Shown here one piece after another: positions 1 to 34,282 of a DNA stretch of 59,520 nucleotides. A program made the position numbers and the translations under genes. The DNA comes from Octopus bimaculoides (lineage: Eukaryota): NCBI RefSeq assembly GCF_001194135.2, contig NC_068985.1, forward strand, positions 34,364,733-34,424,252. Direction: 5' to 3'. The stretch's first letter is position 1; each line of letters starts with the position of its first letter. The notes under the pieces were generated by a model that was given only the letters and a program-made list of their open reading frames with translations, did not search any database and was not told the origin of the DNA.

Positions 1-823
1 GCATGGAAAGCGGACGTTAAACGATGATGATGATGATGATGATGATTGAAAATGTATTTTCTTTTTAAAAGCAAAAATAATTTTATATATTTTGTTATAT
101 TCTATTAAACATAGTTCAATATTAAATTTTACTCTAATTAAATTAAGTATATAAGACCAATTATTGAATTATTAAATTGATTAATAATTTAATAGTTATA
201 TAAAAGTGCATATAAGACTGATTTTATCTAGTTTTCTAATGAATTGTTTGTTTGTTTTCGGGGTAGCCTCAGCCTCTCACCTCCCTTTTGATTCCCCATT
301 TTAGTTTGAATATACTTCTTGAGGTCCTTTTAATTATAGGTTTTTTGAAAATAAATCCTATACTCATATGTGAAGAAAAAGTTTTCCTGATGGCTTGGGT
401 TCAGTTTGAATGATTGATCAATGATTTAACTTGGTGGATCGACCTTTCCACCCTCGCCTCTGATGCTTTGGATCTAGATAGAATATTTATGATAATTAAA
501 GTAACTTATAAAAACTTAGGTAAAATGAAGTAAAAAGAAGTAGATACTTGCACACTAACGATGCAGAAAAATATAATTAAACATGAAAGTACGGAATCAA
601 GAGCAGAAGTAGGATGAGATAAGAAGAGAGAAAGAAAGAAGTGGTATAATTTGACAAAACAAAAAAGAAAAATGAATCTTAAAGAGACTTGTACAGATGT
701 TAACCAGTTAGCATGGACGTTGTTGATTTTGACATTTGCTTTATGACTTACAGTGCAGCAACAAAATATTTAAATATCCTTTCCAAACAATAAATAACCC
801 ATTTTTAATCTAATTTCATGAAG

Positions 824-883
824 GTGTGGAGCATCATTATTTTGAAGTTTGTGAGCACCAAAATATATGCCCAAAACTGCCTG
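824..883 (+). CDS. Coding exon (type A, 60 nt, phase 1-1) of an unnamed Tyr-motif tail gene; xVEHHYFEVCEHQNICPKLP
   Basis: Acceptor atttcatgaag|, donor |gtaaat, length divisible by 3, open frame. Codon-aligned with exon type B (EHQNIC vs EPKYVC). Near-identical copy at 2787-2846. Confidence 0.7.
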
Positions 884-1060
884 GTAAATATAACAGACAT
901 TGATAGCACACAACATGACTTTAGAATAGTCTAAAACATGAATAGAAAGCTAACAACCATATTTTGAATTAGCTCTCTTTTTACTTTTGTTCATATGTGA
1001 GTGTTTGTATCTTGGTATTCATTGTAGTAGTGTCTGCTCATTACTAGCATATTTTAGATG

Positions 1061-1852
1061 TCAGGAATTCCAACCACATTTTGTGGTTCACCACCTCAAC
1101 AGCCCCTTTGTAGGATCCAGTGGCTAAAGACATCATCAGGAGAAACCACGTCCAGTTTCAGCCCCTACTTGTCAACCGTTTTTGATGTGGTGGTCCCCTC
1201 ACCTTTCGGAGGTGTCTTCAGCTCTGGTGTTGAATGCGTTTCTTCTTTCTCCTTTTTTCTTTTGTTCTTTGGTTTCTTCAATGCAGTGTCAACGAATGTC
1301 AGCAGGCAACTGACCATCCTGCCAAAATTCCCTTCAAATACTTGCCAGTAGGCTCCAGCAGTCAACACCAGCTAACTGTCACTTGACACTGTCTAAGCTT
1401 CATCTGACCAATGGAGTTTTAGCATATGCCCTCTTTAAATCTGCCTTCCAACAGTGTCGTGTTAGTTTCATTTCTAGCAGCCAGATCTGACCAGCTGTTT
1501 AGTGGTACAAGTCTTCAAACCAGAGGGAGGGCATGCAAAGAACAAGATCGTTACCTTGGCCCAAATGTCAATCAGTGATGCTGCTTAAGTGTCAGCCAGA
1601 CTCACCTAGCAATGCTATTTCCCACTCAGCATGTTATAGCTTTCAAGCCATTTTGGATCTTCTCACTTCAGCCATATATAGAAGCTGGCTTTTTCGACTG
1701 CCTCTTGTATCCTCCTTATTACTTTTCTCAGCTCTGAGCTCGAAAATGCAAACCTTCTTTTAAATAATGTCGTCATTTTCCTTTCAATGAAGCCCCTAGC
1801 CTCCATTGCCAGGTGGTAATACTCGACAGTCCATCCCTGTTCTCTGCACTCT
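1061..1852 (-). mobile_element. 3' fragment of a HERO/R2-superfamily (RLE) non-LTR retrotransposon inserted in an intron
   Basis: ECREQGWTVEYYHLAMEARGF...IRRIQEAVEKASFYIWLK resembles the RLE C-terminus of HERO-type elements. The segment is absent from the paralogous intron at 3030-3040. Confidence 0.65.
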
Positions 1853-2302
1853 TGTTTTGTGTTCACTTTTTAATCCCTTGAAGATCTCAATATGCATTTC
1901 TTTTATGTAATTTCTATAAAAAAAAAAAATTAGCATTTTGTGGATAGAAAAGAATTTTGAGTATTTTACTTTATGGAGGAACCTTCTCTCCAAACACTAA
2001 ATTTGATATGCCATATCTATCAAAACTGATCTTTCTGTTTTTTCATAAGAAATGAATTTATGAGGCAATATTTTTCTGTTTTTCAATACATCTATGAGAA
2101 GATGAAGAGCTTATACTTTACATTCAGTTTGACTGTATTTCAAATATATTTTCTTTCTCAATACATGTTTATATAGAGATGCTTATATACAAAATATACA
2201 TTATAAGATATCTTTACTACTTTCCGTGCAATATTGAAACACTTAAAATATCCTAACAATAAATACACCCATTTTATATTAAATTTCTTTTAGTTTTTGA
2301 AG

Positions 2303-2353
2303 ACGAAGATGTTGGAGATAGTGAGCCCAAATATGTATGCATGAAACAACCCA
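2303..2353 (+). CDS. Coding exon (type B, 51 nt, phase 1-1); DEDVGDSEPKYVCMKQP (YxxM motif)
   Basis: tttcttttagtttttgaag| acceptor, |gtaagt donor, open frame continuous with flanking exons. Confidence 0.8.
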
Positions 2354-2786
2354 GTAAGTATGAATCAATATTGGAAGTACACAGCACGCCTTCAGAATAG
2401 TGCAAAACCTGAAAAGAATGCCAACACTAACGTTTTTCTATTGATGTGTGTATGTGAGAAGCCTTCTCTCCAAGCACTAACTTTGAAATGCCATATTAAG
2501 TAAAATTAGACGTTCTTTGTCCTTATTTGTTCATAGTAAATGAATTTATTAGACATTATTTTCCTTTTCTGAATACATCAATGAGAGGAGGAGATGAAGA
2601 ACTCATACTGTACTCTAAGTTTGACAGGATTTCAAATAATTTTTTTTACCTAATACACGTTTATATATAAAATAAGTGTTGCAATATATTTTGTCATTTG
2701 CTTTATGACTTGCAGTACAGCAACAAAATATTTAAAACACTTTTTCCAAACAATAAACAACCCATTTTTAATCTAATTTCATGAAG

Positions 2787-2846
2787 GTGTGGAGCATCAT
2801 TATTTTGAAGTTTGTGAGCACCAAAATATATGCCCAGAACCTCCTG
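2787..2846 (+). CDS. Coding exon (type A', 60 nt, phase 1-1); SVEHHYFEVCEHQNICPEPP
   Basis: Same splice sites as 824-883, open frame. Confidence 0.7.
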
Positions 2847-3486
2847 GTAAATATAACAGACATTGATAGTGTACAGCATGACTTTAGAATAGTCTAAATC
2901 ATGATTAGAAAGCTAACAACTATAATTTGAATTAACTCTCCTTTTACTTTTGTGCGTATGTAAGTGTTTGAGTGTATCTCAGTGGTATTCATTGTAGTAG
3001 TATCTGCTCACCACTAGCATATTTTAGATGTTATAATAATGTTTTGTGTTCATTTTTCAATCTCTTAATGATCTCAATATGCACTTCTTTTATGTAATTT
3101 CTATAACAAAATGCTAATTTTGTGGATGGAAAAAAATTATGAGTGTCATACTTTATGGAGAAACCTTCTCTCCAAACACTAAATTTGATATGCCATATCT
3201 ATCAAAACTGATCTTTCTGTTTTTTTTCATAAGAAATGAATTTATGAGGCAATATTTTTCTGTTTTTCAATACATCTATGAGAAGATGAAGAGCTTATAC
3301 TTTATATTCAGTTTGGCTGTATTTCAAATATATTTTCTGTCTCAATACATGTTTATATAGAGATGTTTATATACAAAATATACATTATAACATATTTTTA
3401 CTACTTTCTGTGCAATATTGAAACACTTAAAATATCCTAACAATAAATACACCCATTTTATATTAAATTTCTTTTAGTTTTTGAAG

Positions 3487-3537
3487 ATGAACATGCTGAA
3501 GATAGCGAGCCCAAATATGTATGCATGAAACAACCCA
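3487..3537 (+). CDS. Coding exon (type B', 51 nt, phase 1-1); DEHAEDSEPKYVCMKQP
   Basis: ttttagtttttgaag| ... |gtaagt; paralog of 2303-2353, frame preserved. Confidence 0.8.
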
Positions 3538-3768
3538 GTAAGTATGAATTAATATTGGAAGTACACAGCATGCCTTCAGAATAGTGCAAAACTTAAATAG
3601 AATGCTAACACTGACTTTTTTCTGTTGATGTGTGTATGTGTGTGTGCACATGTATGCGATTATTTCAGTGTGTCTTTAATATTTATTCTGGTAGTATTAG
3701 CACACTTCTAACATATCTTAAATATTATTTACAGCTATGTTATTTATTTTCCTTTATATTTCTTAAAG

Positions 3769-3810
3769 ACTTGGATGCTGTTTATGTTAACATTCCAAAG
3801 AAACCTGATG
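3769..3810 (+). CDS. Coding exon (type C, 42 nt, phase 1-1); NLDAVYVNIPKKPD (YVN motif)
   Basis: Polypyrimidine tract plus ttaaag|, |gtaagt donor; paralog at 8563-8604. Confidence 0.8.
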
Positions 3811-4334
3811 GTAAGTATTTAAATGTATTGCAGGACAAGTTAGTAACAATTTTGGCTCATTCTTTCTTTGAATAGAACATACAGCTTAATATGTTGGTAG
3901 GATTGCAATTTAAACTTTAAAAATGATGGAAATCCATTGAATATATGATAAACATCTTGTAGGCATTCATTTGTACCTCCAATATTTTACCATTTTATTA
4001 ATCCAGTTTGTAAAACAATTTTCTGTAAGTTTCAGTTGTACAGCAAATAAACCAAATAATGATATAAGTAGTATTGCATTCACTAAATATTTGCATTGAA
4101 ATTAGACAAAATAGTTTGGGAGAGATTTGCAACTGGGAGAGTTCTACACCTTTATCATTTATTTTTGATGAGTAGCCACATTCACTCCTGCTTATGGACA
4201 CTTCTGACATGAAATTAATATTGGAAAGTGTCTTATTTCTGTAGACATATTTGTGAGCAATTTCTCTTAATGGTAACTTTTAAATATCAGTAAAATATTT
4301 GATGACTGATATAGTAGAATGCTGTCAAATCCCT

Positions 4335-4760
4335 TTAACCCTTAAATGGTGTGGACATCACCAATTGATATTTCATTAGAGAACAGCAAACGTCATCAAC
4401 TGATGTTTTATTAGAGAACAGGGGGCATCATCAATTGAGTTTAAAAAAATTTTGCATGAATACAGCCATCTTCAAGTAACACCTGAGCATCTACTTCATC
4501 AAATGCATCTAAGTGTAAGTGGCCCTTACTGATGAGAGAAATCAAGTCATAACTGGAATATCTATACAATGATGAAGAAGATTTTTCTGGGTTGTTTTCA
4601 TCATCAGATGAGTTAGATTATGATGATGATGATGATGATGATGATGATACTCTAGGAATCACAGAAGAAAGTGATGCTTCAACTAGCTCTGGATGTGAAA
4701 AATACACTGATTTTCCCCATGTGTACAACAATGTAGAACAACAATGCTGAAATCTCAAAT
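4335..4760 (+). mobile_element. Possible piggyBac 5' fragment
   Basis: TTAA|CCCTT start exactly where homology to the paralogous intron (about 9125) stops. Degenerate acidic N-terminus (LYNDEEDFSGLFSSSDELDYDDDD). No right TIR found. Confidence 0.4.
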
Positions 4761-6122
4761 GATTTTGGCTAAAATGATTTTATTACCTTTTAGTCTTTAT
4801 TTTAATAATCTAAGAGAAGTAAAATATTGTTTCCTTAGTTTTTGTAGTAACTTAAAGTGAAAATAAGTATAAAAATTATCCTTAAGAAAAAATGTTTTTG
4901 TTTTTGCCTTGTTGACACATGTATTCAAACAACCTTTTCCTAGCCACTGTTTAAAACTTAAAGTAAATTTTGTTCTGTGAGCAATTCTCCCACACATAAA
5001 TACTACTTTTATATAATATCTCTACTAAAATTAGCATTTTTTGCTTCTATAATAATAAAAGCAAAATTCTGTCTCTCTCTCTGGGATCCCTGTATCTCAG
5101 TCTGAATTTGCTCCACATAGACATAATATACCTTTTTGGAGTCAGTATGATCACAGGATTGAAAATCTGCCCTTCATTTGGCTCTTGAACATACATTATT
5201 AGGATCTGATTTAAAAGCATTTGGGTTGCCATTTCTAGCAGTTAAAGTTTAGCTGATTCATGCCATCTTGGTTGGCATTTGTCAGATGACATCAGAGGAG
5301 AAGATAAATGACATTTGCTTCATTAATTTTACATTGAGATGAAAAATCTGGGACAAATTGGTTAACAGTTGGAATTCAACTTGGGACTGACACAATAGAA
5401 TGATCGCATTACAGAATTAATTCTCATCTGTCTTTAACCTCTGATCAAACACTACTGAGACATATAGTCATTATAGTATGATAATCATGCTACTTAGCTC
5501 TGTTTAGTTTTGAGCCACAGGCCCAATTAGCCCTCCACAGGAGCTAGCTTAAAAGTCTGCACAGAGTGCTGCCTTTATACTAGTATGGAATATAATTTAA
5601 GAACCACTTTACTGAAGAACTTTCTTTCCAAGCACTAACTCTGAAATGCTATATTTACCAAAATTAGGCTTTCTTTCCTCTTTACTTTTTCATAGCAAAT
5701 GAATTTATTAGGTATTAGTACACTCTTTTAAAATACATCAAAGCAAGGATGAAAAACCTATACTTTACACTCAGTTTGGCTGTATTTCAAATATTTTTTG
5801 TTTCCAAGTACATGTTTATCTATATGATATAATATACATTACAATATATTTTATTATTATGACTTTTGCTATTTCTGTGCAACATCAAAATAATTAAAGC
5901 TTCTTCTACAAACAATAAATATCCCATTATTTACATTTGACAGATATTTGTCCTCATCTTGTTTCCTCCTCCTCCTCCTNNNNNNNNNNNNNNNNNNNNN
6001 NNNNNNNNNNNNNNNNNNNNNNNNNNNNNNNNNNNNNNNNNNNNNNNNNNNNNNNNNNNNNNNNNNNNNNNNNNNNNNNNNNNNNNNNNNNNNNNNNNNN
6101 NNNNNNNNNNNNNNNNNNNNNN

Positions 6123-8395
6123 ACTCAACAACAACAACAACATTTAGCACCTGCTTACCATGCTGGCATGGATTAGGTGGTGCCACAGGAAGTGGCAAGT
6201 CAGAAGTAGCACCAATTCCTGCTGTCTGCTTTAGCATGGTTTCTATGGCTGGATGCCCTTCCTAACACCAATCATTTTACAAAGTGTACTGGTTGCTTTT
6301 ACATGGCACCAGCAGCAGTGAGGTCACCAGGTAACTAGCAAGACAAGACCCCTCACCTGAAGGTGGGAGAAATATTGAGGGACAGAAAAATGAGTCATGC
6401 ATTAGAGAAGAAATGTGACTGCCTCAGGTGGAGTGTGAGTGGAGAGAGAAAGGAGAGAGAGAGAAGATGAAGGTGTGAGGGTGAGTGGATTGGAGGTGAG
6501 TGTGAGTGAGTTCACAAGATTGTGAAAGGAGAGTGGTGGATGGAGAGGGGATGTAATGAGTGGGAACAGTTAGAGGGAGGGGGTATGACAGGGTATGTTG
6601 TGGGAAAGAAATTCAATGGAGACATATTGCATGCAGGTAGGTATGTGAGGGAGGAGTGGGAGGGAATGCAATGGGTGGGGTGAGTGGTGGATGATGGGTT
6701 AATGAGAAATGTTGGATGATGGTTTGTGTGCATGAGGTGGGGCAGAGACATAAAAGACATGACTTTAGGACCTCAATTTTACTTAGCTGGCTAGGTTTTC
6801 TCGAGCACAGCAAATCACCAATGGTCTCAGTACTTTATGATCTCCTCTGTCATTCCTGGTGAAGATTATTTCTCACTATTTTGTCTCATGTCTTCCTGGG
6901 TCTACTCCTTCTACAAGTTCCCTCCACATTTAGAGATCAGCCCTTCTTTATGCAGCTGTCCTCATCCATATGCATCACATGACCATAGCAGCACAATCTT
7001 CTCTCTTCACTACATCTGATGTCACTTGTACCCAATTTTTCTCTTAAAAGATTTACACTTTGTCGAACCTCACACTGACATTGCACATCTAGCAGAGTTT
7101 GCCTGCTTCATTTCTTACAAGCCTTCACATGTCCTTTTCAGTCACAACCCATGTTTCACTGCCATATAGCACAGTTGTCCATACACATGCTTTATATAAT
7201 CTGCCTTTCACTCACAGAGAAAGACCCTTTGTTACCAACAACAGTAATAACTCTGAACTTTATCCAGCTGGTTCTTATTCTAGTAACTACACTTTCAGAG
7301 TATTTTTGTTTCCTGCTAATTTGGTCTCTAAGGATCTCTCTGGGCATTTGAGGAAGTCTATTTCCTGTGTATTCTTAGTGTTTATTGTACCTGCACATCT
7401 GTCACACACACAGACTACTTTCTCTGTTAATTTACCTCTGATTCCACTGTACTTCTAACTTGCAGTAGATACATTATAGGAAAATTCTACTTACACCTTT
7501 TATCCAGTATGACCATTTTCCTGAAGATATTAGTAATTTATTTGCACTCCTGCTTACTAGTACTTTAGTCTTTGCTAAGTTAACTCTAAGGCCATTTTTC
7601 ACTAAATGCTTCTCCTGCAGTTGCCTTATTAAGAAGATAGCATTTGTATCTCATCTATGTTAACTATTTTCCTAATTAGTTGAGCTATGACTTTCTCAGT
7701 AACTTTCATTTCCTGGTCCAGTAATTTGATACCTCTGTAATTACTTCTCTCTAAGGCATCACCTTTACCTTTGTAATAGTTGATTGTAACACTGCTGCAT
7801 CAGTTATTGGGTATGACCTCTTTCTGGACAACCTGATGGACTAAACTGGTGACTAGGCCATATCACACACTACCAGATACCTTAAGCATCTTGGTGATAA
7901 TTCTTGATAGACCAAGGGTTTTCCCCATCTTTATATCCTTAATTGCTTCACCTATCATGCTGCTTTCAACTCAGATAGCTAGTCCCTCTGTTGGACTCAG
8001 TTTAGGAAGATTCTCCTTCTCCCAGGCATTCTCCACATTTAGAGACACTACATTTTCTTTGAAGATTCTCTAAGTGCAAGTGTACCATCATCCATGCAGA
8101 CACATTTCTCTCCTACAACATCATTATTTTCTCTGACACTGTCTACAAATCCAAAACACCACACACCGCTTGACCTCACAGTGCAGAACACTGGCAAACG
8201 TCTTCCTTTCTACTTTTCCCCAAGCTAAATATACTCATCACTTAGCTTCCCTTCTAGCTACCTGGCATACTTATCTGCTATTCCCACTCGTTCACTCCTT
8301 TCAGGCCTATTTCTTTATGCTTATGGTTCTATTTCATTGTTCCACCACCATGTAACCCTAGGTCTGGTTGTAACTTTGCACCAGCTACAAATGGT
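6123..8395 (-). mobile_element. RTE-clade LINE (octopus-type family), degenerate and internally deleted, with CT-rich 3' UTR and simple-repeat tail
   Basis: Minus-strand remnants DVVGEKCVCMDDG and KGRLYKACVWTTVLYGSETW match the better-preserved copies at 56317-56870 and 58818-59520. Confidence 0.8.
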
Positions 8396-8562
8396 CCTCA
8401 ATAAGTTGTCCCATAGGAACATGTGCATATGTGAGTGTATGTGTGAGTGTGTGCATTTGAGCCCATTTTATTAGCATTTATTATTAGTGTCAACACACTA
8501 CTAACATATTTTAAATGTTATTTACGGCCATTGTTATTTATAATTTTTTACTTTTTTTAAAG

Positions 8563-8604
8563 TCATGGATGTTGCTTATGTTAATCTTTCAAGGAGACCT
8601 AATG
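8563..8604 (+). CDS. Coding exon (type C', 42 nt, phase 1-1); VMDVAYVNLSRRPN (VAYVNL fits ITIM consensus)
   Basis: actttttttaaag| ... |gtaact. Same length and frame as 3769-3810, with YVN retained despite divergence (TAT GTT AAC vs TAT GTT AAT). Confidence 0.75.
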
Positions 8605-9390
8605 GTAACTATATAAGCAATCTTTTATTAAAATTACTTTCATTAAAGCAAGAGTTAGAAAACATTTTGGCTCATTATTTGTTTGAATAGAATATACAGC
8701 TTAATAATATATGTGTGCATGTATTTAAAGAAGTCCCTTAAAATATTAAAATTTCATTGCTTGTATAAGCTACTTCTTGTAAACATTCATATATAACCAC
8801 GCTTTTGCACTTTTATTAATCCTTACTAACAGTCTAGTTCATTAATGTATTTTTTGTAACTTTTATTTATACAAAGAAACAAAAAAAGGATAACATTAGC
8901 CCTGAGTTATTAGACATGAGACACAAAGTATAAAGTAGGTTTGCAATGGTGAATATTTCGCACCTTGATCAGCTATTGTTGTTGAATACCCACAATCAGT
9001 CTTGCTTATAGATACCTTTGGCATGAAAATAATATTGGAAAATAGTGAATGGTTTCTCTTAATCTAATGTTACTATCTTTAAATATCAATAAAATATTTG
9101 AATAACAGAAATAGTAGAATGCCAAATTAAATACTTAGCATTATTTAATTTAGTCCCACTGCTTTCTGAGCTCAAATCCCATTGATGTCAATTTTGTCTT
9201 TCATTTTTCTATGATCAACATAATAAATATCAAAGGTCTACTAAGTTGTCTAATTTGTATTCACTGTGAAAAAAATCACTATTTTTAATGCTGTTTATGT
9301 AATTGCTTTTCTTTTTGTTAAGCTTTGTATTAACGTATATATTATATATATTCTATATTTATACTCAACTGTTATACTTGATATGTCTAG

Positions 9391-9446
9391 ACACTGTAAA
9401 TGATAGCCTGAATGACATTTATGAGAACAATAATCAAAGGAATGAG
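9391..9446 (+). CDS. Coding exon (56 nt, phase 1-0); DTVNDSLNDIYENNNQRNE (YEN motif)
   Basis: atgtctag| ... GAG|gtaaat; phase matches upstream (1) and downstream (0) exons. Confidence 0.75.
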
Positions 9447-10217
9447 GTAAATACATGTGTTTTTTATTGCCTTTTTATGTTTTGCTTTCTTGAAAGTAGA
9501 TAGTGTCAGAATAGTTGGGATATGATTAAGTTGTTTCTTCATATTGTAATTATTGTTACTCATGCTTTTATCCCTTTGACATTTAGATTAGTTTCTTAAA
9601 TGTAATATTTATTTATTAACATTGTTTTGAAATAATCATACATTATCTTGTAGTTTTGAGATTTTGGTGATGTGATTGTATATTTTTAGAATGACATTAT
9701 TGGGTAGGTATGAGAGACTGGAGCTGATCATTTTGAGTATAAAATGTAATATGGTTGGTTTGATTTACTGTATCTGAAATCAAACTGTTTTATTGATTTT
9801 TCTTCTTCCATGAAATTTTTTTGATGATGATGTCATGTATTGAAAAAACATGTTTCTAATATGTTTTAAAAGTAGAACTGTGCATTCAAAAAAATATACT
9901 AAACTATAGACATATATTAACATTTTCTTACTTTCTTTTTAATGTATTCTAAACTGACTATATCCATATGCAGAACAACTGTTTATAAAACTAGGCAAAC
10001 TAAAAGTAATAGCAAACTAAAACTTAAGCCTATGGAAAAAGAAATTGTTTATAATTATTATTGATGCTACATACTTAATGTATGCGCTTTGTTTAAAGAC
10101 TTTTAGGCTGTGATATTCTGTCAAGGGAAATTTCCTTTAAGACATAGTGTTAAGAAACATTATATCAAAATCAGGTGAAAGGAATCCGCACCATAGTTGA
10201 ATGAAAATGACAGATAT

Positions 10218-10487
10218 TGATATTTCACTGTTATTTCAGCTCATTGGTGTCATATATTTGAGTCACCCTCAAAATAAATTCAAATCACTGGTCTGATATA
10301 TATGCAAATAGTGCGAAATCTAAGTAAAACAAAATTTTTGAGTTAGATGTAGCACTGTGTGGCACTGTTGCACATCAGCTGATAGATTTTATGCCATTTG
10401 CATATGCATCAGACCAGCGATTTCAATTCATTTTGAGGGTGATTCAAATATATGGTATAGATAAGCCAAAATAACAACAAAATATCA
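10218..10487. repeat. Foldback/MITE-like element with about 105-bp imperfect inverted arms
   Basis: tatttgagtcaccctcaaaat..aaatcactggtctga vs tcagaccagcgatttc..attttgagggtgattcaaata. Confidence 0.75.
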
Positions 10488-10668
10488 CTATCTGTTGTTC
10501 CCATTTACCTATGGGGCAATTCATTTTGCCTGGTTTTGAGGTATACAGTGTATTTTAACATGTTACATCTTAAAGGGACTTTTCTTAGATGAAATACCAC
10601 AGCCTAAAAGCATTTAAACAAAATGCATACATTAAGTATTCTCAAAATTTAATTTATATGATTTCATA

Positions 10669-10931
10669 CCTATGGCACGTAAAAAGGACCGTTCAAGCAT
10701 GGTCGATGTCAGTGCCGCCTGACTGGCTCCCATGCTGGTGGAATCTAAAATGTGCCCTCTACACTCTCGGAGTGGTTGGTGTTAAGAAAGGCATCCAGCT
10801 ATAGAAACCTTGTCAGATCAGATTGGAGCCTGGTGCAACCTCCTGGCTTATCAGTCCTTAGTCAAACTGTTCAACCCATACTAGCATGGAAAGTGACATT
10901 AAACAATGATGATGATGATGATGATGATGAT
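10669..10931 (+). mobile_element. Short interspersed repeat ending gcatggaaa..ttaaac(gat)n, probably a 5'-truncated RTE 3' UTR. Other copies: 1-45, 18436-18693, 27584-27818, 41175-41367, 43860-44108, 48680-49227, 57985-58226
   Basis: Many diverged copies in the window with a (GAT)n tail; contiguous with the RTE ORF end at 55780-56870. Confidence 0.85.
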
Positions 10932-11007
10932 AATTTCATTGAACTGTGTATAATAAATAAATTATTTAGTTTCTTTTTACCTTTTCTTAGTTATGGTGAT
11001 ATATATA

Positions 11008-11736
11008 CGAGGTGGTATCAAAAAGTTCCTGGACTATTACTGTAGCCTTGCCAACAGATGGCAGCACACGGTTGCATGTGCAGTGGGAGCTAGCAGTGAC
11101 TTTCATGAGGCAGTGTGCCAAGTGACATCACTGTGTTTACTTTGCAAATTGTGAAATTTGTTTTTTTTTGTGATCATGTGTATGCTGTAGTCTGTGATTT
11201 TGTCATGGACATAAACAAAGAGCCAATATGAAATTTTGCATTAAACTTGGGAAGTCTGCTACAGAGACATTGAGCGTGCTTTGGTAAGCTTATGGTAAGA
11301 CAATGGGTCGTACACAATGTTTTGAGTGGTACAGGCCCTTCAAAAACAGGAATGTTCCTAGAAGATGATGAGTGATCTGGAAGACTTGCCATGAGCATCA
11401 CCCCTGTAAATGTGACATTGTGCATTGAGAATTTGTCCCCTAGGGCCAGACCATCAATAGAGAGTTCTAGTGTGGCATTTTAGCACCTGCAGACTTCCAT
11501 CTCTTCCCTGAGATGAAAATGCAGCTCAAAGGTCACTGTTAAGATCTAGAGTGAATTGCAGAAGGTCTTCGACTCACAGTAAATGACTTCTAGGCTAGAT
11601 TCCAAGAATAGCAAGAATGCTGGGACTGATATATTGTTGCACAAGGTGACTATTTCAAGGGAGATAATGTTAAAACTTAGGTAAATAAGTTATTTTTTTT
11701 ATTAAACTTGTCTGGGAACCTTCTGAATCCACCTAA
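11008..11736 (+). mobile_element. Mariner-family internally deleted element
   Basis: TA + TIR cgaggtggtatcaaaaagttcctggact, with a degenerate inverted copy at 11709-11734. Retains the HTH region and the APADFHLFP remnant. Confidence 0.85.
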
Positions 11737-12308
11737 TTTATGTACTAACATTTCATTGATATTCAGAGATAAAACTTGGATTTTTGATAGACTTCTAAAA
11801 ATACTGATGGAATTAGAGGAATTAAGTTTATTTTATTATTATTTTTATGTAACAAAATCTATCTTTAAAAATGGAGCAGTTTTCCTTCAATATACATTTC
11901 TGACATTTTTCTCACTTCAAAATAGTTTTCAACTGAATTGCATTTAGTCATTTCAATTCTTAAACACTTAGTTGTTAAATAAGGTGACAAAAAGACAAGA
12001 ACTTTTAGTTTATTTTATTTCCTGTCTTCATTAAATGCTACAAATTACTTCTTAGTTTCTGAGCTCACTCAGAAAATGGAAACATTTAACTGTATCATGA
12101 TGAATTCACATGCATTTTAAACTTTTACACAAGAATTGAATGTTCTTCAGGAATGGAAATCTCCAGAACATCTCACAATTAGAACCAATAACTTAATCTT
12201 GTTAAAGGTCATCTAAACACAATACTGCATATCTCGAGACAAAAGTCTATTACACCTTTTTCCTCATGAATATTTAAACTCATTGTAAATTCTAATGCTC
12301 TTCAGATA

Positions 12309-13017
12309 TAAGGTGGTATCAAAAAGTTCCCTGACTAATTCTGCAACAGGTAGCAGCACATGATTGCATGTACAGCAAGAGTGACCTTCACAAAGCAGCG
12401 TGCTGAGTGACACCCCTGTGCTTACTTGGCAAGTTGTGAAATTTGTGTTTTACAGATCACGTGTATGCTGTAGTCTGCAATTTTATCATGGACAGGAACA
12501 AAGAGCCAACGTGAAATTTTGCATTAAACTTGGGAAGTCTGCCACAGACACATTGAGCATGCTTTGGCAATCTTATGGTGAAGAGGCAATGGGTTGTATG
12601 CAATGTATCATATGGCACGGGTGCTTCAAAAATGGAAGAACGTCCTTGAAAGGCAATGAATGATCTGGAAGACTTGTCATGAGTGTCACCTCTGGAAATG
12701 TGGAGAAAATTCATCAGCTTGTGCATGAGAATTGTCAGAGGACAATCAACGACATTGCCAATGTTGTTGGTCTGTTGTATGGGCCCAGCAACAATTGGAT
12801 TCTTCACAACAACAATGGACCCTTTCACTGAGCTCTCCTCACTCAGTTTCTCACCATAAACAACATGGTGTTACTTCCACACAAACCCTATGTGCCAGAT
12901 ATAGCACCTGCAAACTTCCATCTCTTCTTGGAGATAAAAATGTGGCTCAGAGGTTGCTGTTTTAACACTGTTGTCGAGATCCAGAGTGAATTGCAGAAGG
13001 TCCTTGACCCACTTAAG
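12309..13017 (+). mobile_element. Second mariner element of the same family, right end cut by an RTE insertion
   Basis: Same TIR; EQRANVKFCIKLGKSATDTLSMLWQSYGEEAM is the mariner N-terminal HTH. Confidence 0.85.
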
Positions 13018-13960
13018 GTCCTAATCATCTTTGTTCATAACTAGTTTCTTCAGGTTTTCCCTCACACAGTCTTTATACCTTTTTCTCGGTTTATGTTGTG
13101 GTTGCTTACCAGAATTGACCTCACCATAAAAAAGACGCTTTGGCAATTTCTCATCTTTCGTTTTAATATGTCCAGCCCATCTCATTTGCACTAAGATGAT
13201 ATGTTGTTCAATTGAGCTACAACGTGCCAAGCAGCAAAACTTCTGTATCTGGTATAAAACATTTCCACTTGACTCCCAAGGTATGCCTGAGGCACTTTTG
13301 ATGAAATCTCTCCAGCATTTTCATATGATGACTGTAAGTGGTCCATGTCTCACTCAGATAAGAAGTGCAGTTAATACACATGCTTTTTGTCTGCAAGGAA
13401 ACACCTCTATCTGTCCATACTCACTTTTTGAGCTTTCCAAACACAACACTTCCCTTCTTTATTCGATAGTATATCTCTGCATCAAGACCACTATCTCTTG
13501 CCAGTGTGCTTCCAAGGTAAGCATAAATGTCAATGACTTATAACATTGTCCCATCTACAAAAATGTTTGGTTCAGGATACGGTTGCCCAGCACAGGAGTA
13601 AACATTACTTTGGTTTTCTCAAGACTAATTGTGAATCTGAAATGTACACATGCTGTGGAAAATCTGTTCATTATTTGTTGCATGTTCTCCTCTGAGTGTA
13701 TCAACAAATCAGCATCATCAGCATAAAGTTATTCTCTGACAAGTGTTTTGAAAGTCTTTGGCTTGTATGTAAACCGGGTAAGATTAGAAATGTGACCAGA
13801 TATCCGATATCTGATTCTGATCGCCCTGTTGCAATCCTTGAAAGCATACCAAAGCAATGAGAAAACTAAATAAAGAAAAGTGTAGGGGCAGAAATATCTC
13901 CCTGTTTGACACTGTTGTTCACTGAAAAGTCATGAGACAGCTCACCATTAAGAACTACCT
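13018..13960 (-). mobile_element. RTE/BovB-like LINE fragment (RT to C-terminus)
   Basis: YADDA motif, VKQGDISAPTLF, QMRWAGH..KLPKRLFYGEVNSGKQPQHKPRKRYKDCV. Confidence 0.85.
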
Positions 13961-13989
13961 GAGGATGGATGAAAATCTCTTATGCTGAA

Positions 13990-15440
13990 ATCTGTAACAA
14001 TGAATATGTAACCAGAAAATGTTACACCAGAATAAAGAAAGTATGCTTCTCAGAACTTTTAGAATATAATAAATTGTGCAACAGTACTCATATCAATAGC
14101 TTAGCTATTTGATGGACACTAGATGAAATCTGGGTTATTCAGATTAAAACCTGATAATTGTTAACCTATACCAGGAAGTCCTACATCAATAATGCTGTAG
14201 AATGAAGATAAACTTGCTGAGGCTAAACATCATGACCTTGAATGTCATGTCAAGTCTGCTTATGTGATGCCAATGACATCATGAGAGTTGGAAAGGAGCT
14301 TCTCAGATATATTCCCTGACTGATGATTGGAGATATGCAATTGGAAAAGTTTCACAATCCTACTGCAATAAATCGTCAGAAGTGACACTCATTACATATT
14401 GAAAAAGTTTATGTATGGCTATATTTCCAAAGAAAAAGCAACATTTTTAACCAGAGACAGGTAGACAGGTATTGCAAGTCACAAAACTATCAAGAGGAAT
14501 TTCAGTGGACCTTTGAATTAAACCAAGATCTCTAGCAATTCTATGAAAAGGCTAGAGAAGATCCCTTGACTGGTTATATGAAAGAGATGCAGGATGACTG
14601 GGATCTAAAATACCCCAACTATTCAAACTTCAGTGCCAAACAACTATGATAATAAACACACAGGAGTGGCTGTGTGGTAAGTAGCTTGCTTACCAACCAC
14701 ATGGTTTCGGGTTCAGTCACACTGAGTGGCACCTTGGGCAATTGTCTTCTACTATAGCCTCGGGCCAACCAAAGCCTTGTGAGTGGATTTAGTAGACGGA
14801 AACTGAAAGAAGCCTGTCATATATATATCTATGTGTGTGTGTTTGTGTGTCTGTGTTTGTCCCCCCAACATCGCTTGACAACCGATGCTGCTGTGTTTAC
14901 GTCCCCGTAACTTAGCGGTTCGGCAAAAATAGACTGATAGGATAAGTACTAGGCTTACAAAGAATAAGTCCTGGGGTCCATTTGCTCGACTAAAGGCGGT
15001 GCTCCAGCATGGCCGCAGTCAAATGACTGAAACAAGTGAAAGAGTAAGAGAGTAACCTCCAGCAAGAAAAATTTTCTGCCCATCCCCATTTCAGAATCAC
15101 ACACTAAACTCTTCTGAGAGTTGCTACAAAACTACCAAACAAAAAAATTCACCTGGATGGAAAATGAGAGTTATTGGTACAGAAAGCACATGTTCTACAG
15201 GGTAGCCCTTTATAAACTGCTCAAAAGAGCAATGAACACTGAAATTGATGTGCCAGATTGGCAGACAGTAGCACATACAATACTAGTGGCTAAAAATGAG
15301 AAGCATACGGCCCAAAACTACAGGTCCATAGCATACTTAAATGTTAAGTATAAATTATATACAATTTTCTTGAATGCATTTCTTCAGGATCACTGTGAAA
15401 CAATGTGATGACTGAAGAGCAGGCAACAGGAAAGAAAGGA
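13990..15440 (+). mobile_element. Degenerate, rearranged R4/Dong-like LINE fragments interrupted by a SINE
   Basis: NDIMRVGKELL, YEKAREDPLTGYMKEMQDDWDLKYP, and PDWQTVAHTILVAKNEKHTAQNYRSIAYLNVKYKLYT (RT domain 1-2 like). Confidence 0.65.
14662..15050 (+). mobile_element. tRNA-derived SINE, full length. Other copies: 33795-33990, 34050-34260(-), 41672-41990(-), 43017-43320
   Basis: A-box-like tggctgtgtggt and B-box-like gggttcagtc, central (TG/TA)n, conserved 3' body cccgtaacttagcggttcggcaaa. Confidence 0.85.
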
Positions 15441-16116
15441 GTATTTTTTGATGAGGATCTTACTACTACTTGTACCACCACCACTACCACCTGTACCACC
15501 ACCACTACCACTTGTACCACCACCACTACCACTACTATGATCTCATAGTTTTTATTTTCCATATTCTCTTGTTCATCCTCATATATCAGCTTCTGCTTTC
15601 CAATTTTTTTTTATGGACTGGGTAGCAGGCACATTATGCTGCAGTTTAATGTCACCTGGATGACATTTGGTCCATGGGTGTCTAAGCAGAGTTTACAATG
15701 CTGCAAGCATTTTGATCAGACTTTTAGCCCAGGAATTTGTGTGATCCTTTCACACTCCATCACCCTCTATCTTTCTCTCAATACCAAAAATTAGATCCAA
15801 ATCCTTTGATCAATTCTTTCTCCACTTTCCTCTCCAACCTAGATTCTACATAACACCTCTTACACACAAACCACACAACTTATTTCTCTCTATGATGCAA
15901 ATTTTTCAACACCTGTCTACAACCCATTTCCATTTTCCAGGTTACATTCTTCTCCAGTTTCACTCCACAATAAAGTAGCTGTACACACAAGATGCATTGC
16001 AGAAAGTTTGATACTTTTCTAAGCAGAGAGAGTTATAACTATCCATGATTATTGTAAATTTAGTATATTCTTACTGTATATTTATTAAACTGACCACTCA
16101 ACTTTTGTTATTCCAG

Positions 16117-16161
16117 ATTGAAGGAGATGGCTATTACAGCACTTTGAACACACCCGACTAA
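16117..16161 (+). CDS. Terminal coding exon; IEGDGYYSTLNTPD-stop
   Basis: acttttgttattccag| acceptor, phase 0, TAA at 16159-16161, followed by about 1.4 kb of nearly TE-free sequence. Confidence 0.7.
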   Translation: MEGDGYYSTLNTPD

Positions 16162-17490
16162 ACGCTGCTTGTCACAGCTTCCCACAAAATACATCTCTTC
16201 CTTCTATCACTCTCTGGACTTTAGATTACCAGTGAAGGGGTCTATGTTCTTCAGATGAACAAAAAGAACCTAAAACCTTGTAATATAGTATATAACACCT
16301 AGAACTGAATGAAATCTTGCGAGCAACCTAAGTCAGTCTCATTGTCATCATTTCATGGAACACTTTTTACAAGCACTACAGATTTGAACTAAATATCTGA
16401 TACCACCATAACATTATTGATCTCTGTTATATGCTGAATTGCATCATTGTTTTTTGTATTCACTGCATTGACAAATTTTTGGTTGATTTTTAATTGTTAT
16501 AAATGTCTATCTATAACTAAACATTTGCATAAATGAAGTAAACCAGTTAAATTTTGGTATTTCTTTCCTCCTATATGAGTCATCATCAGGTAAAATCACT
16601 ATGGATAATTAGCAACATGGCTGTGACTGCATGATCAAAATTCGTGATGTTTGTCTTACAAAAGTTCTGTATATACTTTCTGTTATTTTACTTCACTGTG
16701 ATCTTTGTATTTTGATTTCCTTCTATCACATTTAAATATACATAAATTCAGAATTATAGTCCATGGCATTATTAAATTCAAATTTGATTTTTCTAGCCCT
16801 TTTGAATCTAGGGTCAGCTTTCTTTTAAATACTCAAATTATATATACCAGAATTAATTTTTTTCTCTTGGTGATTGTGAGGCTATATTTTTTGATATCCA
16901 CATGTAACCATTCTTTCAATACATGGAATTCTCTCAGCAACAATGCATGTTGGAAGTTTTCCAACTATGCTTACATACAGAAAGCATAAAATTAAAGATC
17001 TTATTTCATTCCTTCTTTTGGAAGTATTGAATACGCGATACCTAGTTTATTACTTTTGTTATTTTATCTCTTCTCTCTATACATTTTAAATTCTATTCTG
17101 ATCTTTAGATATGAGCTTTGCAACTATGTTATTAGCTGTAGGTCAGGCCTGATTGAGCTGACCTATGATTGGTGTTCAGTCATGATCATCCCGTTTTTTT
17201 AGAATTATGTCAAGGTGTATATTATCATTCCTTGTGAACAGTTATCACATAATTCCCATAAAAGATTATTCTAATCTTAAATAATTCCCTGAAATATTTA
17301 ATTTGTTACCAAGTCATCATTGTCATCACTGTCATTTAACATCTGCCTTTATGCTGGCATGGGTTGAACAGTTCTGTTTAACAATTTAAAAAATGTGCTA
17401 TCTTGTGCATTTTAGATAGTAATCATTTCTTCACTATTTCAGCAAGTACTGTCAAGGCTAGGCTTTGCTGATAAGGTCAGAATAAAACTA
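16162..17490 (+). other. Probable 3' UTR of the Tyr-motif gene; candidate AATAAA at 17481-17486
   Basis: Follows the stop codon, AT-rich and almost repeat-free. The poly(A) site is a guess. Confidence 0.35.
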
Positions 17491-17634
17491 AAACCTGTTC
17501 AGAGTTGATGAAAACATCAAAATATTAATCAGTGATTAATATCATGATGTTTTTCTAGTTGCTTATTTATTTCTAGTTTATTTTTAAATTATTTATGTAT
17601 TAAATATGTTGCTAATAGCTTCTTTTTGTTTAGG

Positions 17635-18693
17635 GAGACAGATCAGTCAAAATTCCCTTCTATATGTAGAAAAGTGTTGGGCGAAACTTCATATGGTGTA
17701 CCTAGTGCAAGCTTTGGATACATAAGAGGTGGATTGGTATCACAGGAAGATATAGAGAGAAAGTAGTTTTTACATGTGGAAGATGTGTAGGTACAGTAAA
17801 TACCAAAAATGTACAAAAAATAGACTCCCTCAAATGTCTGGCAGGGATCCTTAGAAGTAATAGATAATCTCTGTTACTTAGGTGACCAAGTTAGCAGTGG
17901 TGGAGGTTGTTCTGAAAGCATAACTGCTAGAATAAGAATAGGCTGGGAAAAGTTCAGAGAGTTACTACTTGTATTAGCAATGAAGGTCCTCTTACTCAGA
18001 GTTAAAGGCAGATTTTATTATGCCTGTGTATGAACAGCTATGCTGCATGGCAGTGAAACATGGGCTGTAACTGCTGAGGACATGCAAAGGCTTGAAAGAA
18101 TTGATGAATGGATAATGTCAGTGTCCATTTATGATAGAGTGTAAGTGGTTTGAGAGAAAAACAGGATATGCAGGACATCAAATGTGGTGTGTAAGACTGT
18201 GCTGGTGCAGTCTTGTAATGTATATAAGTGAGGACAATTGCATCGAAAGGTACTGTTTCCTAATTGTAGAGGGAAAATGTGGAAGTGATGAAAAAGGATC
18301 TTCAGATGTTGGGCCTTACAGAGAGTATGATAGGGGACCAAGACTTCTGGTGGTTTGCTGTGCTTGAGAAGACAAATCAAGTTATGTAAAACCACGGTTG
18401 TTCTTGCATATAGGCATGTCCCCAACATCCCTCTTCAGCTGAATATTCCTAATCTTGCAGGCTTGTGGGTGCTAGTACCACATAAAAAGTACCCGTGCCA
18501 TTTCCATGTTAAAGCACATGTGCTGGTGCCGCATAAAAGCATCCACTAGACTCTTTAAAGTAGTTGGCATTATGAAGGGCATCCAGTCGTAGAAACCATA
18601 CCAAAAAAGACATGGTGCCTGGGCAGCTGTCCAGCTCCTGGCAAACCATCCAATCCATGCTAGCGTGGAAAACAGACTTTAAATGATGATGAA
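17635..18693 (+). mobile_element. RTE LINE 3' portion (degenerate) with 3' UTR
   Basis: KGRFYYACV*TAMLHGSETWAVTAEDMQRLER.., same family as 56317-56870. Confidence 0.8.
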
Positions 18694-19117
18694 ACTATCT
18701 AACAGAATTTGCTTTGAATTAGCTTCATATCCCAGACAGAAATTTGTTTCTTTTCTTTTTTAATATTACATAAGAATGTAAATACTGACTTTTCAAGAAG
18801 GGTTGTTAATCTCTTTTCATCTTAATTTGATCAATTCCTCTTCTGTTTGTATTTTGTGTGATTGCATGTGCATGTGTGTAAAACAGGTTTAAAATAGGAT
18901 ATAAATTGAAAATTCTAAATGTGTTTTTTTCATAGGATATATAACTTTTCTGTATGAGTTTTCTGTTCACATTATATTTTACATTGTATTGTTTTCTTTT
19001 CTAGAAAATAAGTTTTTTCTTCATTTTCACATCCATTTTTTTCATACAGAGTTATGGGCCTTACTTGTGGATGTGGGAAAGGAATGAGGTGGGAGGAAAT
19101 AACTGGATGATTATATT

Positions 19118-26290: not shown

Positions 26291-27563
26291 TAGGAATTGA
26301 ACAAAATAATGGAAACACTTTAAAATTTCAAACAAATTAATTTTAATATGGGGTAGGACCGCCTCTGGCAGTAATTACAGCTTGAATTCTACGAGGTATG
26401 GACTTGTACAAAGTTTGAATTGTTTCCAAAGGAATTTTTGTCCATTCGTCAGCTAAAACAGTCTTTAGTTCTTGTAGCGATGATGGTGGAGGATATCGAC
26501 TTCTTACTTGTTTTTCTAAAATGCGCCATAAATGTTCAATAATATTGAGATCTGAGGACTGTGAGGCCAGATAAGATGTTCAACTTCACCAGAATGTTCC
26601 TCGTGCCATTCAGTAACAACTTTAGCTGTGTGAATTGGTGCATTATCATCCTGAAAGATTGCGTTTCCCTCCAGAAACAGTTCCGCAACCATAGGATGAA
26701 TTTGATCAGATAAAATGCTTAAATAGTCTTGACTATTAATTCTGCCATGAAGGGAAACCATTGGGTCGGCGGATTTCCAAGATATAGCCCCCCCCACCCC
26801 CAGATCATCACAGATCCTCCTTCATGTTTAACAGTTGGAAGAAAGCAGTCTGGGTTAAATGCTTTTTTTGGTTGTCTCCACACGTATATTCGGCCGGTGG
26901 TCGGAAATAAGGTAAAGGATGACTCGTCCGAGAAAATAACATTCTTCCACTGCTCTAGGGACCAATTCTGTAGGTTTTCACTCCACTCAAAACGCTTTGC
27001 AACACTTGTTTTGAAAGTAGTGGTTTTCTGATTGCAGCCTTCCCGTTAAACCCGGCTTTATGCAGCTCCCGGCGAACAGCTTTTGTGGAAACTGGGTTCT
27101 TGAGGTGATCATTAAGCCCTGCTGTAATTTTGGGAGCTGTACTTTTGTGATCTTTTCTAATAATTCGCGTAAGAGTCCGACGGTCCTATCTGAAAGTTTT
27201 AGTTTTCTTCCGCAGTTTTTTTTGGACGAGGAGGGTTTTTCCTTCTTTCTTAAAGGCTGTCATTACTTTCATAACAGTTCTTCTTGATACACCAAACATT
27301 TCAGCTGTTTACGTTGCGCTAGCGCCTGCCATACGAGCACCAACAATTTGACTTCTTTGAAAGTCTGATAGATCTGTCATTTTAATGAATTTTAATTACC
27401 TTTTTCTGATGATATCTGAAAACAAACAGCAATTTTAGCAAAACATATTAGGCAACACTAATAATAAATTTAAAAAAACATAAAAATAAACAAATTTTTG
27501 ACGGTTTTATAGATATTTCAAAATTATGATGCTAGGTGTTTCCATTATTTTGTCAAACCCGTC
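26291..27563 (-). mobile_element. Tc1 transposon, near full length, transposase pseudogenised (about 27380 to 26345)
   Basis: TIRs ..acaaaataatggaaacac at both ends with TA flanks. MTDLSDFQRSQIVGARMAGAS*, SDESSF, FQDDNAPIH and frameshifted WP..SPDLNIIEHLW (DD34E). Confidence 0.93.
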
Positions 27564-34230: not shown

Positions 34231-34265
<35 letters not shown>

Positions 34266-34282
34266 TATACACATATATACGA

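Follow-up and report, generated by a model that had tools for sequence, protein, structure and literature searches.

The question raised by a 59,520-nucleotide stretch of the Octopus bimaculoides genome (contig NC_068985.1, positions 34,364,733 to 34,424,252 of the forward strand; hereafter the window) is whether a series of very short open segments near its start are true exons and, if so, what kind of protein they encode. An earlier reading of the bare sequence (the original prediction) had joined 8 such mini-exons, here called e1 to e8, into the cytoplasmic tail of a candidate signalling receptor or adaptor with one tyrosine motif per exon. Our comparison with other octopods leads us to regard window positions 824–16302 (plus strand) as, in all likelihood, the 3' part of the orthologue of the Octopus sinensis gene LOC115212119, i.e., of a predicted receptor with immunoglobulin (Ig) domains and a tail assembled from tyrosine cassettes.

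All 8 of the 8 predicted peptides were located on the plus strand at their given positions. With the borders as originally drawn, an AG precedes each segment (mostly as a weak acceptor of the AAG type), GTAA(G/A/C)T follows all of them except e8, and the lengths from e1 to e8 are 60, 51, 60, 51, 42, 42, 56, and 45 nucleotides. Joined together, they yield exactly the predicted peptide, which is closed by a TAA stop codon at 16159–16161. The symmetry ascribed to the first 6 exons is confirmed by phases and lengths, in that e1 to e6 start and end in phase 1 and are multiples of 3 nucleotides long; as the same is true of the orthologue's tail exons up to the counterpart of e7, any subset could be skipped without a frameshift. 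Of the idea of 8 GT–AG mini-exons in one frame, the presence and joining of all segments therefore stand, but the acceptors of e2 and e4 more likely lie 9 nucleotides further upstream, and e6 and e8 are doubtful.

The chain of open, phase-compatible segments with GT and AG borders is by itself not beyond chance. With thresholds set to the weakest donor and the weakest acceptor among the originally proposed sites, each full 16-kb bin of the plus strand contains 12–15 candidate mini-exons, and a chain of 8 segments with compatible phases within 16 kb also exists in the remaining plus strand. Among 300 simulations of 16.2 kb with a Markov-3 model, the longest chain had a median of 5 members, and about 10% of the simulations reached at least 8. 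Splice-site and phase statistics were therefore rejected as proof of exons since they fail to separate the chain from chance. Hidden Markov models (HMMs) of the cassettes, run against the six-frame translation of the whole window, matched only in e1–e6. The seed of the 20-residue model consisted of cassettes from O. sinensis and O. vulgaris alone, and its E values ranged from 4e-13 to 4e-7 with the next best match at 0.56; the 14-residue model, the seed of which included e5 and e6 themselves, found these two at E values of about 1e-7. Judged by these matches, the homology of the segments, unlike the chain alone, is beyond chance. The 134-residue spliced tail on its own had no match in a word-indexed protein database, which was a false negative of the word prefilter; a "no hit" of such a search with a short repetitive query is unreliable.

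When the spliced tail was compared to a protein database together with the read-through frames, it led to XP_036359229.1 of O. sinensis (E value 5e-42), and BLASTP of the tail alone against this protein gave 160 bits, 60% identity, and an E value of 1e-52. The gene is thus less hidden than originally believed, because in the sister species RefSeq already predicts it under the title "uncharacterized protein LOC115212119 isoform X1". The 90% cluster of this protein also contains isoform X2 (XP_036359230.1) and the O. vulgaris protein CAI9722591.1 (887 residues). These orthologues begin with a signal-like N-terminus followed by Ig domains (Ig_3, I-set, Ig_2, and C2-set_2 in Pfam), one hydrophobic helix (VFLGTIIGCTVGSVLLLITLGLVAY), the residues KFHKIR, and then the cassette tail. 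For comparison, we fetched the O. sinensis locus (L002, 1–76704) and the O. vulgaris locus (L003), and the window is collinear with both: from its position 45 to past 19 kb, it matches them in blocks of 87–91% nucleotide identity. Each cassette of XP_036359229.1 is its own exon with AG and GT borders and in phase 1 up to the orthologue of e7. The exon of the transmembrane (TM) helix lies at L002 19407–19511, and the place corresponding to window position 45 follows about 24 kb further downstream, so the earlier guess that TM and ectodomain exons would be found upstream of the window was right, and the order of Ig domains, single TM helix, and cassettes in the orthologues likewise argues for the proposed cytoplasmic tail of a cephalopod receptor.

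A second model in L002, LOC115212116 (1220 residues), covers the entire LOC115212119 locus. Approximately its first 320 residues are common with the 887-residue O. vulgaris protein, and beyond them the two are merely similar. The overlap of LOC115212116 and LOC115212119 would reflect either chimeric models or tandem paralogues with common 5' exons.

The orthologous loci also allowed us to assess the mini-exons individually (Table 1). They support e3, e5, and e7 as originally written. The e3 orthologue (L002 38173–38232) is an annotated exon with conserved splice sites and 98.3% identity in the exon versus 90.8% in the flanks, the e5 orthologue (L002 47341–47382) is the annotated exon DLDAIYANIPKKPD with identical splice sites, and the e7 orthologue (L002 62364–62419) is an annotated exon with 92.9% identity versus 84.5% in the flanks. 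For e2 and e4, support extends to versions with a corrected 5' border: The B exons of O. sinensis (VVEDEHAEDSEPKYVCMKQP), annotated three times in XP_036359229.1, are 60 nucleotides long and use an AG 9 nucleotides upstream, which makes the longer forms of e2 and e4 more likely. This shift adds V-F-E, and the upstream and downstream AGs are both in frame. A 29-nucleotide core of the B cassette (GAGCCCAAATATGTATGCATGAAACAACC) is identical in all 8 B copies from three species, and so is the motif YVCM. The first segment, e1, is 98% identical to L002 45585–45644, and the O. sinensis copies there and at 40540 have lost the GT donor (GA instead) and are left out of the RefSeq model. It is a plausible exon in O. 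bimaculoides, where its use is suggested by the intact GT donor. Inclusion and skipping of cassettes in O. sinensis indeed track donor integrity exactly, i.e., the skipped ones are those with mutated donors, and this agreement speaks for the exon definitions. In the orthologues of e6 (L002 61538–61579 and L003 ~96107–96148), the donor reads TTAACT and the annotated proteins leave the exon out, and e6 differs from O. sinensis by 0 synonymous and 2 non-synonymous changes; its status as an exon is doubtful.

Selection on the cassettes, which had been suggested as a check along with the original prediction, is visible between species. We calculated the proportions of synonymous and non-synonymous differences (pS and pN) between the window and O. 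sinensis and obtained a pS of 0.151, a pN of 0.038, and a ratio of 0.25 for e3, e4, e5, and e7 together (Fisher p 0.009–0.04, varying with the rounding of fractional counts). Exons show 15 differences in 278 bases compared to about 10% in introns (p = 0.004), so that exon divergence is about half as large. Both results show that cassettes in use in the orthologues are under purifying selection.

Table 1. Features of the cassette locus in the window (positions of the window, 1-based).
Position	Strand	Feature	Remarks
726–3640	+	Tandem duplication	726–1061 resembles 2688–3031 (90%); 1853–2456 resembles 3040–3640 (92%)
824–883	+	e1, type A 20-residue cassette (G)VEHHYFEVCEHQNICPKLP	Phase 1-1; acceptor catgaAG, donor G/GTAAAT (slash, exon end); HMM E value 4e-13
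2294–2353	+	e2, type B 20-residue cassette VFEDEDVGDSEPKYVCMKQP; YVCM = YxxM	Border per orthologue; originally 2303–2353, with an in-frame AG 9 nucleotides downstream of the corrected start
2787–2846	+	e3, type A cassette (S)VEHHYFEVCEHQNICPEPP	Orthologous annotated exon
3478–3537	+	e4, type B cassette VFEDEHAEDSEPKYVCMKQP	Border per orthologue; original start 3487
3769–3810	+	e5, type C 14-residue cassette (N)LDAVYVNIPKKPD; YxN	Orthologous annotated exon
5606–5964	+	Remnant of a further repeat unit (intron part)	72–73% identical to stretches upstream of e2, e3, and e4
5980–6122	.	Assembly gap (N run, nominally 143 N)	e5–e6 intron; flanked by a run of (CCT)n and by the (CAA)n tail of a short interspersed element (SINE) on the minus strand
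8563–8604	+	e6, type C cassette (V)MDVAYVNLSRRPN	Weak donor GTAACT; exon status doubtful
9391–9446	+	e7, (D)TVNDSLNDIYENNNQRNE; YEN = YxN	56 nucleotides, phase 1 to phase 0
16117–16161	+	e8, candidate proximal terminal exon IEGDGYYSTLNTPD-stop	CTGAC branch-point-like site, pyrimidine tract, CAG acceptor
16225–16302	+	Orthologue of the annotated terminal coding exon	Window reads ITSEGVYVLQMNKKNLKPCNIVYNT-stop; indels shift the frame versus ITSEGPCSSDEQKEPRTCNIITPSRTE-stop
16303–19075	+	Conserved downstream stretch, probably 3' untranslated region (UTR)	Window 16220–19075 is 91% identical to L002 66616–69462

The window gene belongs to a larger group of octopod proteins. An exhaustive HMMER search with the O. 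sinensis orthologue protein revealed paralogues in O. sinensis and O. vulgaris (LOC115212116 with 1220 residues, LOC115212114, LOC115229375, CAI9722594.1, and others), several of which sit on the orthologue's chromosome, as well as further relatives in O. bimaculoides (LOC106880794) and Argonauta hians (GAB1598814.1; the Argonauta relative has 906 residues). The members of this family combine an Ig ectodomain and a TM helix with a tail in which tyrosine cassettes of 20 and of 14 residues alternate. In the paralogues, the number of cassettes ranges from about 4 to about 20 or more, and most tails end with G/S/D-Y-Q. In the O. vulgaris paralogue CAI9722594.1 (locus L005), too, every cassette has a mini-exon to itself, bordered by AG and GT; at the O. 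bimaculoides paralogue locus (L004), gaps prevent the mapping of all cassettes. The tail in the window shares the cassette types, their encoding on own phase-1 mini-exons, and the position collinear with LOC115212119. The family is already present as RefSeq and ENA predictions and otherwise uncharacterised, and a literature search on the LOC and XP identifiers and on cephalopod or octopus receptors with ITIMs (inhibitory motifs of the immunoreceptor tyrosine-based type) found no paper naming or describing it.

Across the family, the 14-residue C cassette follows the consensus D-M-D-G-x-Y-V-N-V-S-K-K-P-x, with the tyrosine in 22 and the asparagine at +2 in 21 of 24 distinct cassettes. The 20-residue cassette has the consensus V-V-E-E-Q-Y-A-E-V-S-E-P-K-Y-L-E/C-M-K-Q-P (21 distinct cassettes); Tyr6 is found in 14/21 and Tyr14 in 16/21, and the residue at +3 of Tyr14 is methionine in 12/21 and leucine in 6/21 more. 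In paralogues, the 20-residue cassette usually carries two tyrosines (EEQYAEV...KYLEM), and in the window gene the A form retains only the first of them (YFEV) and the B form only the second (YVCM), so that one tyrosine per exon is a trait of this gene and not of the family. The DIYENN of e7 recurs in the A. hians relative P0027. The core of the C cassette, Y-V-N-(V/I/L)-S, forms an N-x-S sequon in most family members (e.g., at window 8581–8595), and e5 (3787–3801) has NIP instead. Glycosylation is unlikely given that the stretch is cytoplasmic by topology. The serine at +4 is kept in 18/24 C cassettes of the family and may be part of the motif or a phosphorylation site.

Expansion of docking sites by exon duplication, as originally proposed, finds support in the tandem units as well as in the variation of cassette number and order among species and paralogues. 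The cassettes multiplied by tandem duplication of segments of 0.5–2 kb. Besides the young copies (Table 1), similarity amounts to 69% between the older A and B units and to 66% between the units of e5 and e6; Tandem Repeats Finder reported none of the units in the window, as their period is too long. The order is A(KLP)-B-A(EPP)-B-C in the window and A'-A(EPP)-B-[A dead]-B-[A dead]-B-C-[pseudo]-C-AB-[C dead]-D in O. sinensis, and both the KLP-type A cassette and e6 of the window have GT donors where O. sinensis lost them. The A(KLP) copy has a GT donor (GGTAAAAA) at L003 76896 versus a dead one (GGAAAATA) at L002 40545, which means that the on/off state of this cassette differs between very close species; the O. 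vulgaris model omits the cassette at L003 76896 despite its GT donor. The visible differences in cassette use follow dead donors and thus represent evolutionary switching, not regulated skipping.

These observations would fit a wider model that we put forward tentatively and consider possible, if still rather doubtful: a lineage-specific, partly clustered set of octopod Ig receptors with a "cassette counter", in which unequal crossing-over duplicates cassettes, donor changes switch them on or off, and tissue-specific skipping possibly contributes as well. If true, one ectodomain could be coupled to widely differing counts of Grb2-type and phosphoinositide 3-kinase (PI3-kinase)-type sites, and the family would be an independently evolved invertebrate counterpart of the paired or modular immunoreceptor clusters of vertebrates.

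The assembly gap in the intron between e5 and e6 probably hides part of the gene. Its left flank matches L002 to 50865 and L003 to 87228, and on its right the match picks up again at L002 59088 and L003 93654 with order and strand unchanged, so both sides belong to one locus. At this point, O. sinensis has 8.2 kb and O. vulgaris 6.4 kb that lack a counterpart in the window; the true length of the gap must greatly exceed the nominal one unless O. bimaculoides carries a deletion. In the relatives, three cassettes lie in this stretch, a decayed one and two that are annotated, DMDNAYVNVSKKLN and AVEDYYVEVSELKY(V/A)CMKHP (the second also given as AVEDYYVEVSELKYVCMKHP), and neither the locus comparison nor the HMM scan revealed counterparts of the two elsewhere in the window. 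The direct junction of e5 to e6 that had been proposed is therefore unsafe. With all cassettes in phase 1-1, the reading frame is kept whether or not the gap hides any of them. Left of the gap, the repeat remnant listed in Table 1 runs into a transposon end and then into the gap itself; in O. sinensis, a frame-shifted pseudo-cassette that lacks a donor comes next (L002 51176–51235).

At the C-terminus, e8 is missing from the annotated proteins of O. sinensis and O. vulgaris, which use a distal terminal exon encoding ITSEGPCSSDEQKEPRTCNIITPSRTE-stop. Its counterpart in the window begins 63 nucleotides past the stop codon of e8, at a place where O. sinensis has an insertion of 1.9 kb in between, and is 89% identical to O. 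sinensis in its coding part, with three indels. A paralogue (P0058) ends with NEGLCSTDEQKEPRSFQN, and this identifies the O. sinensis type as the conserved reading of the terminal exon. The counterpart of e8 at L002 64697–64741 retains acceptor, frame, and stop codon (IEGDGYNSTLNTSY-stop), lies outside the RefSeq model, and differs from e8 by 1 synonymous and 3 non-synonymous changes. The orthologues do not support e8 as a terminal exon, which makes this role doubtful. Three readings of the C-terminus may apply: e8 is used and the shifted stretch is UTR, the C-terminus has changed, or the assembly contains an error. Directly behind the distal stop codon, identity to O. sinensis reaches 97% over approximately 150 nucleotides (window 16303–16454), possibly because a 3' UTR element is conserved there.

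How might such a tail work? The SH2 domain of Grb2 is specific for pYxN and the SH2 domains of the PI3-kinase subunit p85 are specific for pYxxM. The gene product would be a type I membrane protein of the Ig superfamily with several Ig-like domains, one TM helix, and a long, probably disordered tail. Ligand binding or clustering would cause Src-type kinases to phosphorylate the cassette tyrosines, and the phosphorylated tail could then serve as a multivalent docking strip for SH2 proteins. The YxN motifs (C cassettes and e7) would fit Grb2/Drk, YxxM (B) would fit PI3-kinase p85, and Y(F/A/I)EV may fit another SH2 protein, and how many sites there are, and in what mixture, would depend on the cassettes that are present and have live splice sites. 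Both the asparagine at +2 and the methionine at +3 are conserved across orthologues and paralogues. From its motifs, the tail thus reads as a docking or activating one rather than as an inhibitory tail of the ITIM type.

Several points weigh against the reading of the locus as a receptor gene with a docking tail. The orthologous proteins are computational predictions of RefSeq and ENA. Exons e6 and e8, which are absent from the annotated orthologues, appear unconstrained with 1 synonymous and 5 non-synonymous differences (pN/pS 1.4), and the distal terminal exon is frame-shifted compared to O. sinensis, O. vulgaris, and the paralogue. Paralogous copies within the window have no excess of exon conservation, with 58% identity in the exon versus 72–77% in the flanks for e2 and e3 and 76% versus about 80% for e5 and e6, and the codon-position pattern of their alignment, counted by eye, is flat. 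We rejected this comparison as a test for coding since the duplicates are too young or functionally diverged, and consider the comparison of orthologues to be the valid one. Regarding function, the SH2 assignments rest on motifs of 3–4 residues that are frequent by chance, the same tyrosines also fit YxxPhi endocytosis signals, and an immune role is a guess.

One alternative, which we consider unlikely, is a receptor with activating as well as ITIM sites, put together in varying sets through regulated alternative splicing similar to that of PECAM-1. The symmetric phase 1-1 cassettes could be skipped without a frameshift, most of their acceptors are of the weak AAG type, an Argonauta relative has TIYADI, which resembles an immunoreceptor tyrosine-based switch motif, and in PECAM-1 a single skipped tail exon removes SHP-2 binding (PMC5664058). 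Yet it is the N-terminus alone that distinguishes the cluster's two isoforms from O. sinensis. The inhibitory sites of the original prediction are also weaker than proposed: The ITIM pattern (S/I/V/L)xYxx(I/V/L) has its only match in the window, VAYVNL, in e6, which is unconstrained and has dead donors in its O. sinensis and O. vulgaris orthologues, the annotated C cassettes AIYANI, NAYVNV, and GAYDNL are no ITIMs, and the residue at -2 is mostly G or D among the 24 C cassettes of the family. An ITAM (activation motif of the immunoreceptor tyrosine-based type), defined as D/E-x-x-Y-x-x-L/I, 6–12 residues, and Y-x-x-L/I (PMC6994640), could be read in relaxed form across the junction of e5 and e6 (DAVYVNI-PKKPDVMDVA-YVNL, spacing 10). 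This reading needs the doubtful e6 as well as adjacency across the gap, and the annotated pair of O. sinensis (DAIYANI-x10-YVNV) has a V in the second ITAM half.

It is distinctly unlikely that the tyrosines act mainly in unphosphorylated form as YxxPhi sorting signals for AP-2 mu2, in which case the protein would be an endocytic or phagocytic uptake receptor and additional cassettes would raise its avidity for clathrin. The pattern Y-x-x-(L/I/M/F/V) is matched by YFEV, YVCM, YVNI, and YVNL as well as by YVNV, YLEM, and YAEV of the consensus sequences. However, it does not need the asparagine at +2 that is found in 21/24 C cassettes and is defining for Grb2-type SH2 domains, the YENN of e7 has no hydrophobic residue at +3, and the 20-residue cassette prefers methionine at this position. 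Docking and sorting roles are not mutually exclusive.

Decay of this gene copy in O. bimaculoides, either as a pseudogene or with a truncated or changed tail and several exons unused, seems very unlikely to us. It would account for the three frame-changing indels in the distal terminal exon, for the two annotated cassettes without a counterpart outside the gap, for the weak donor of e6, and for the database not containing any O. bimaculoides protein with this tail although proteins of this species are included there. But the pN/pS of 0.25 for e3, e4, e5, and e7 and the intact splice sites of all four speak against decay, as does the donor of e1, which is live where O. sinensis lost its GT. The missing cassettes may lie inside the gap, and if e8 is the terminal exon in O. 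bimaculoides, the frame-shifted stretch would be harmless 3' UTR.

Finally, it is hardly credible that the mini-exons are chance open frames within a tandemly repeated non-coding segment, since this view, which draws on phase-compatible chains of 5–8 being common in simulated and control sequence, on paralogous units being no more alike in exons than in introns, and on tyrosine and asparagine codons being frequent in AT-rich DNA, has to contend with the match of the spliced peptide to an annotated protein of Ig domains, TM helix, and tail (E value 1e-52), with purifying selection between species, and with cassettes kept in paralogues at no more than 50% identity and in Argonauta, so that it is refuted for e2–e5 and e7 and survives for e6 and e8 individually with a roughly even chance each. 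Two further candidates were rejected. A neuropeptide precursor, suggested by KK/RR pairs in the C cassettes, does not fit the proline after the basic pairs, the lack of glycine amidation sites, and the location of the segment after the TM helix in the orthologues. A MEGF10/Draper-type tail, suggested by a YVEMKSP-like motif, does not fit the ectodomain, which is Ig and not EGF.

The closest systems to the octopod receptor tail proposed here are its own orthologues, O. sinensis LOC115212119 and O. vulgaris CAI9722591.1, which have the same cassette types in the same general order with one cassette per phase-1 exon, but differ from the window in cassette number and order and in the frame of the C-terminal exon. 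Beyond octopods, vertebrate PECAM-1, CD22, and FCRL carry tyrosine motifs on separate small exons and tune their signalling by exon choice. Grb2-type pYxN and p85-type pYxxM sites on one disordered chain are also known from CD28 (YMNM), CD19, and the IRS/Gab proteins; their sequences are unrelated and their motifs are not repeated exon cassettes. PECAM-1 itself combines six Ig domains with a tail whose eight exons undergo alternative splicing, and loss of exon 14 abolishes SHP-2 binding (PMC5664058). Single tyrosine motifs on single exons, with the signalling motif as exon module, are what the two systems share, whereas PECAM-1 has two ITIMs and no repeated cassettes and the octopod tail has two cassette types repeated many times, with YxN and YxxM in place of ITIMs. 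A search of the full-length orthologue against PDB sequences returned no chain at an E value of 1e-3, its Pfam matches are only generic Ig families, and representative HMMER matches outside the octopod family are 23–33% identical and restricted to the Ig part. These comparisons point to no sequence relationship with vertebrate PECAM-1 or ITIM families beyond generic Ig domains. Among molluscs, oyster CgIgR has five Ig domains, a TM helix, and an ITAM tail and signals via Syk and ERK (PMC6994640), and an oyster NCAM1 homologue has two ITIMs with experimentally shown signalling (PMC11841013). Both are Ig receptors with tyrosine motifs in their tails, but these are single motifs and not cassette arrays.

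Octopods would thus have arrived independently at the same motif-per-exon design in a more extreme form, with two cassette types repeated up to about 20 times or more. The family could serve as a natural series for the effect of the number and type of SH2 docking sites on receptor output, and its members are candidate surface receptors, immune or neural, in an animal group where such receptors are poorly known. The locus also holds a warning for annotation, as exons of 42–60 nucleotides are easily lost in AT-rich and gap-rich assemblies.

The window as a whole is AT-rich animal DNA that is rich in transposons, including long interspersed element (LINE) reverse transcriptase, a remnant of a DDE transposase, and many SINE copies. 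One SINE family with trinucleotide-repeat tails (GAT/GTT) is found at 1–47, 6123–6330 (minus strand), 10673–10934, and 27584–27832, with more copies at 41180–41370, 48944–49222, 55783–56034, and 58036–58230. The gap at 5980–6122 sits in such a trinucleotide tail, and some SINE copies of the window are 98% identical to copies at the O. bimaculoides locus compared to at most 91% for the O. vulgaris locus. The intron between e7 and e8 contains a palindrome or hairpin element of approximately 570 base pairs (10071–10639) that is 71% identical to its own reverse complement; O. sinensis has it at the orthologous position as well (L002 63020–63582). The same intron includes a stretch of 4.3 kb (11026–15330) without counterpart in O. 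sinensis or O. vulgaris, i.e., a lineage-specific insertion, with internal repeats (11003–11414 resembles 12306–12702 at 78%) and pieces of transposons. Further downstream, two LINE-like elements in opposite orientation with matches to RVT_1 occupy 34160–39406 on both strands, and a 459-residue open reading frame (ORF) of this region shares 80% identity with a MetaClust protein and 43% with a reverse transcriptase from O. vulgaris. Exact look-ups of the window ORFs at 1058–1351 and 34160–35539 gave no match. A DDE_3 transposase remnant lies at 26516–26797 and an ORF with zf-RVT at 29335–29685, both on the minus strand.

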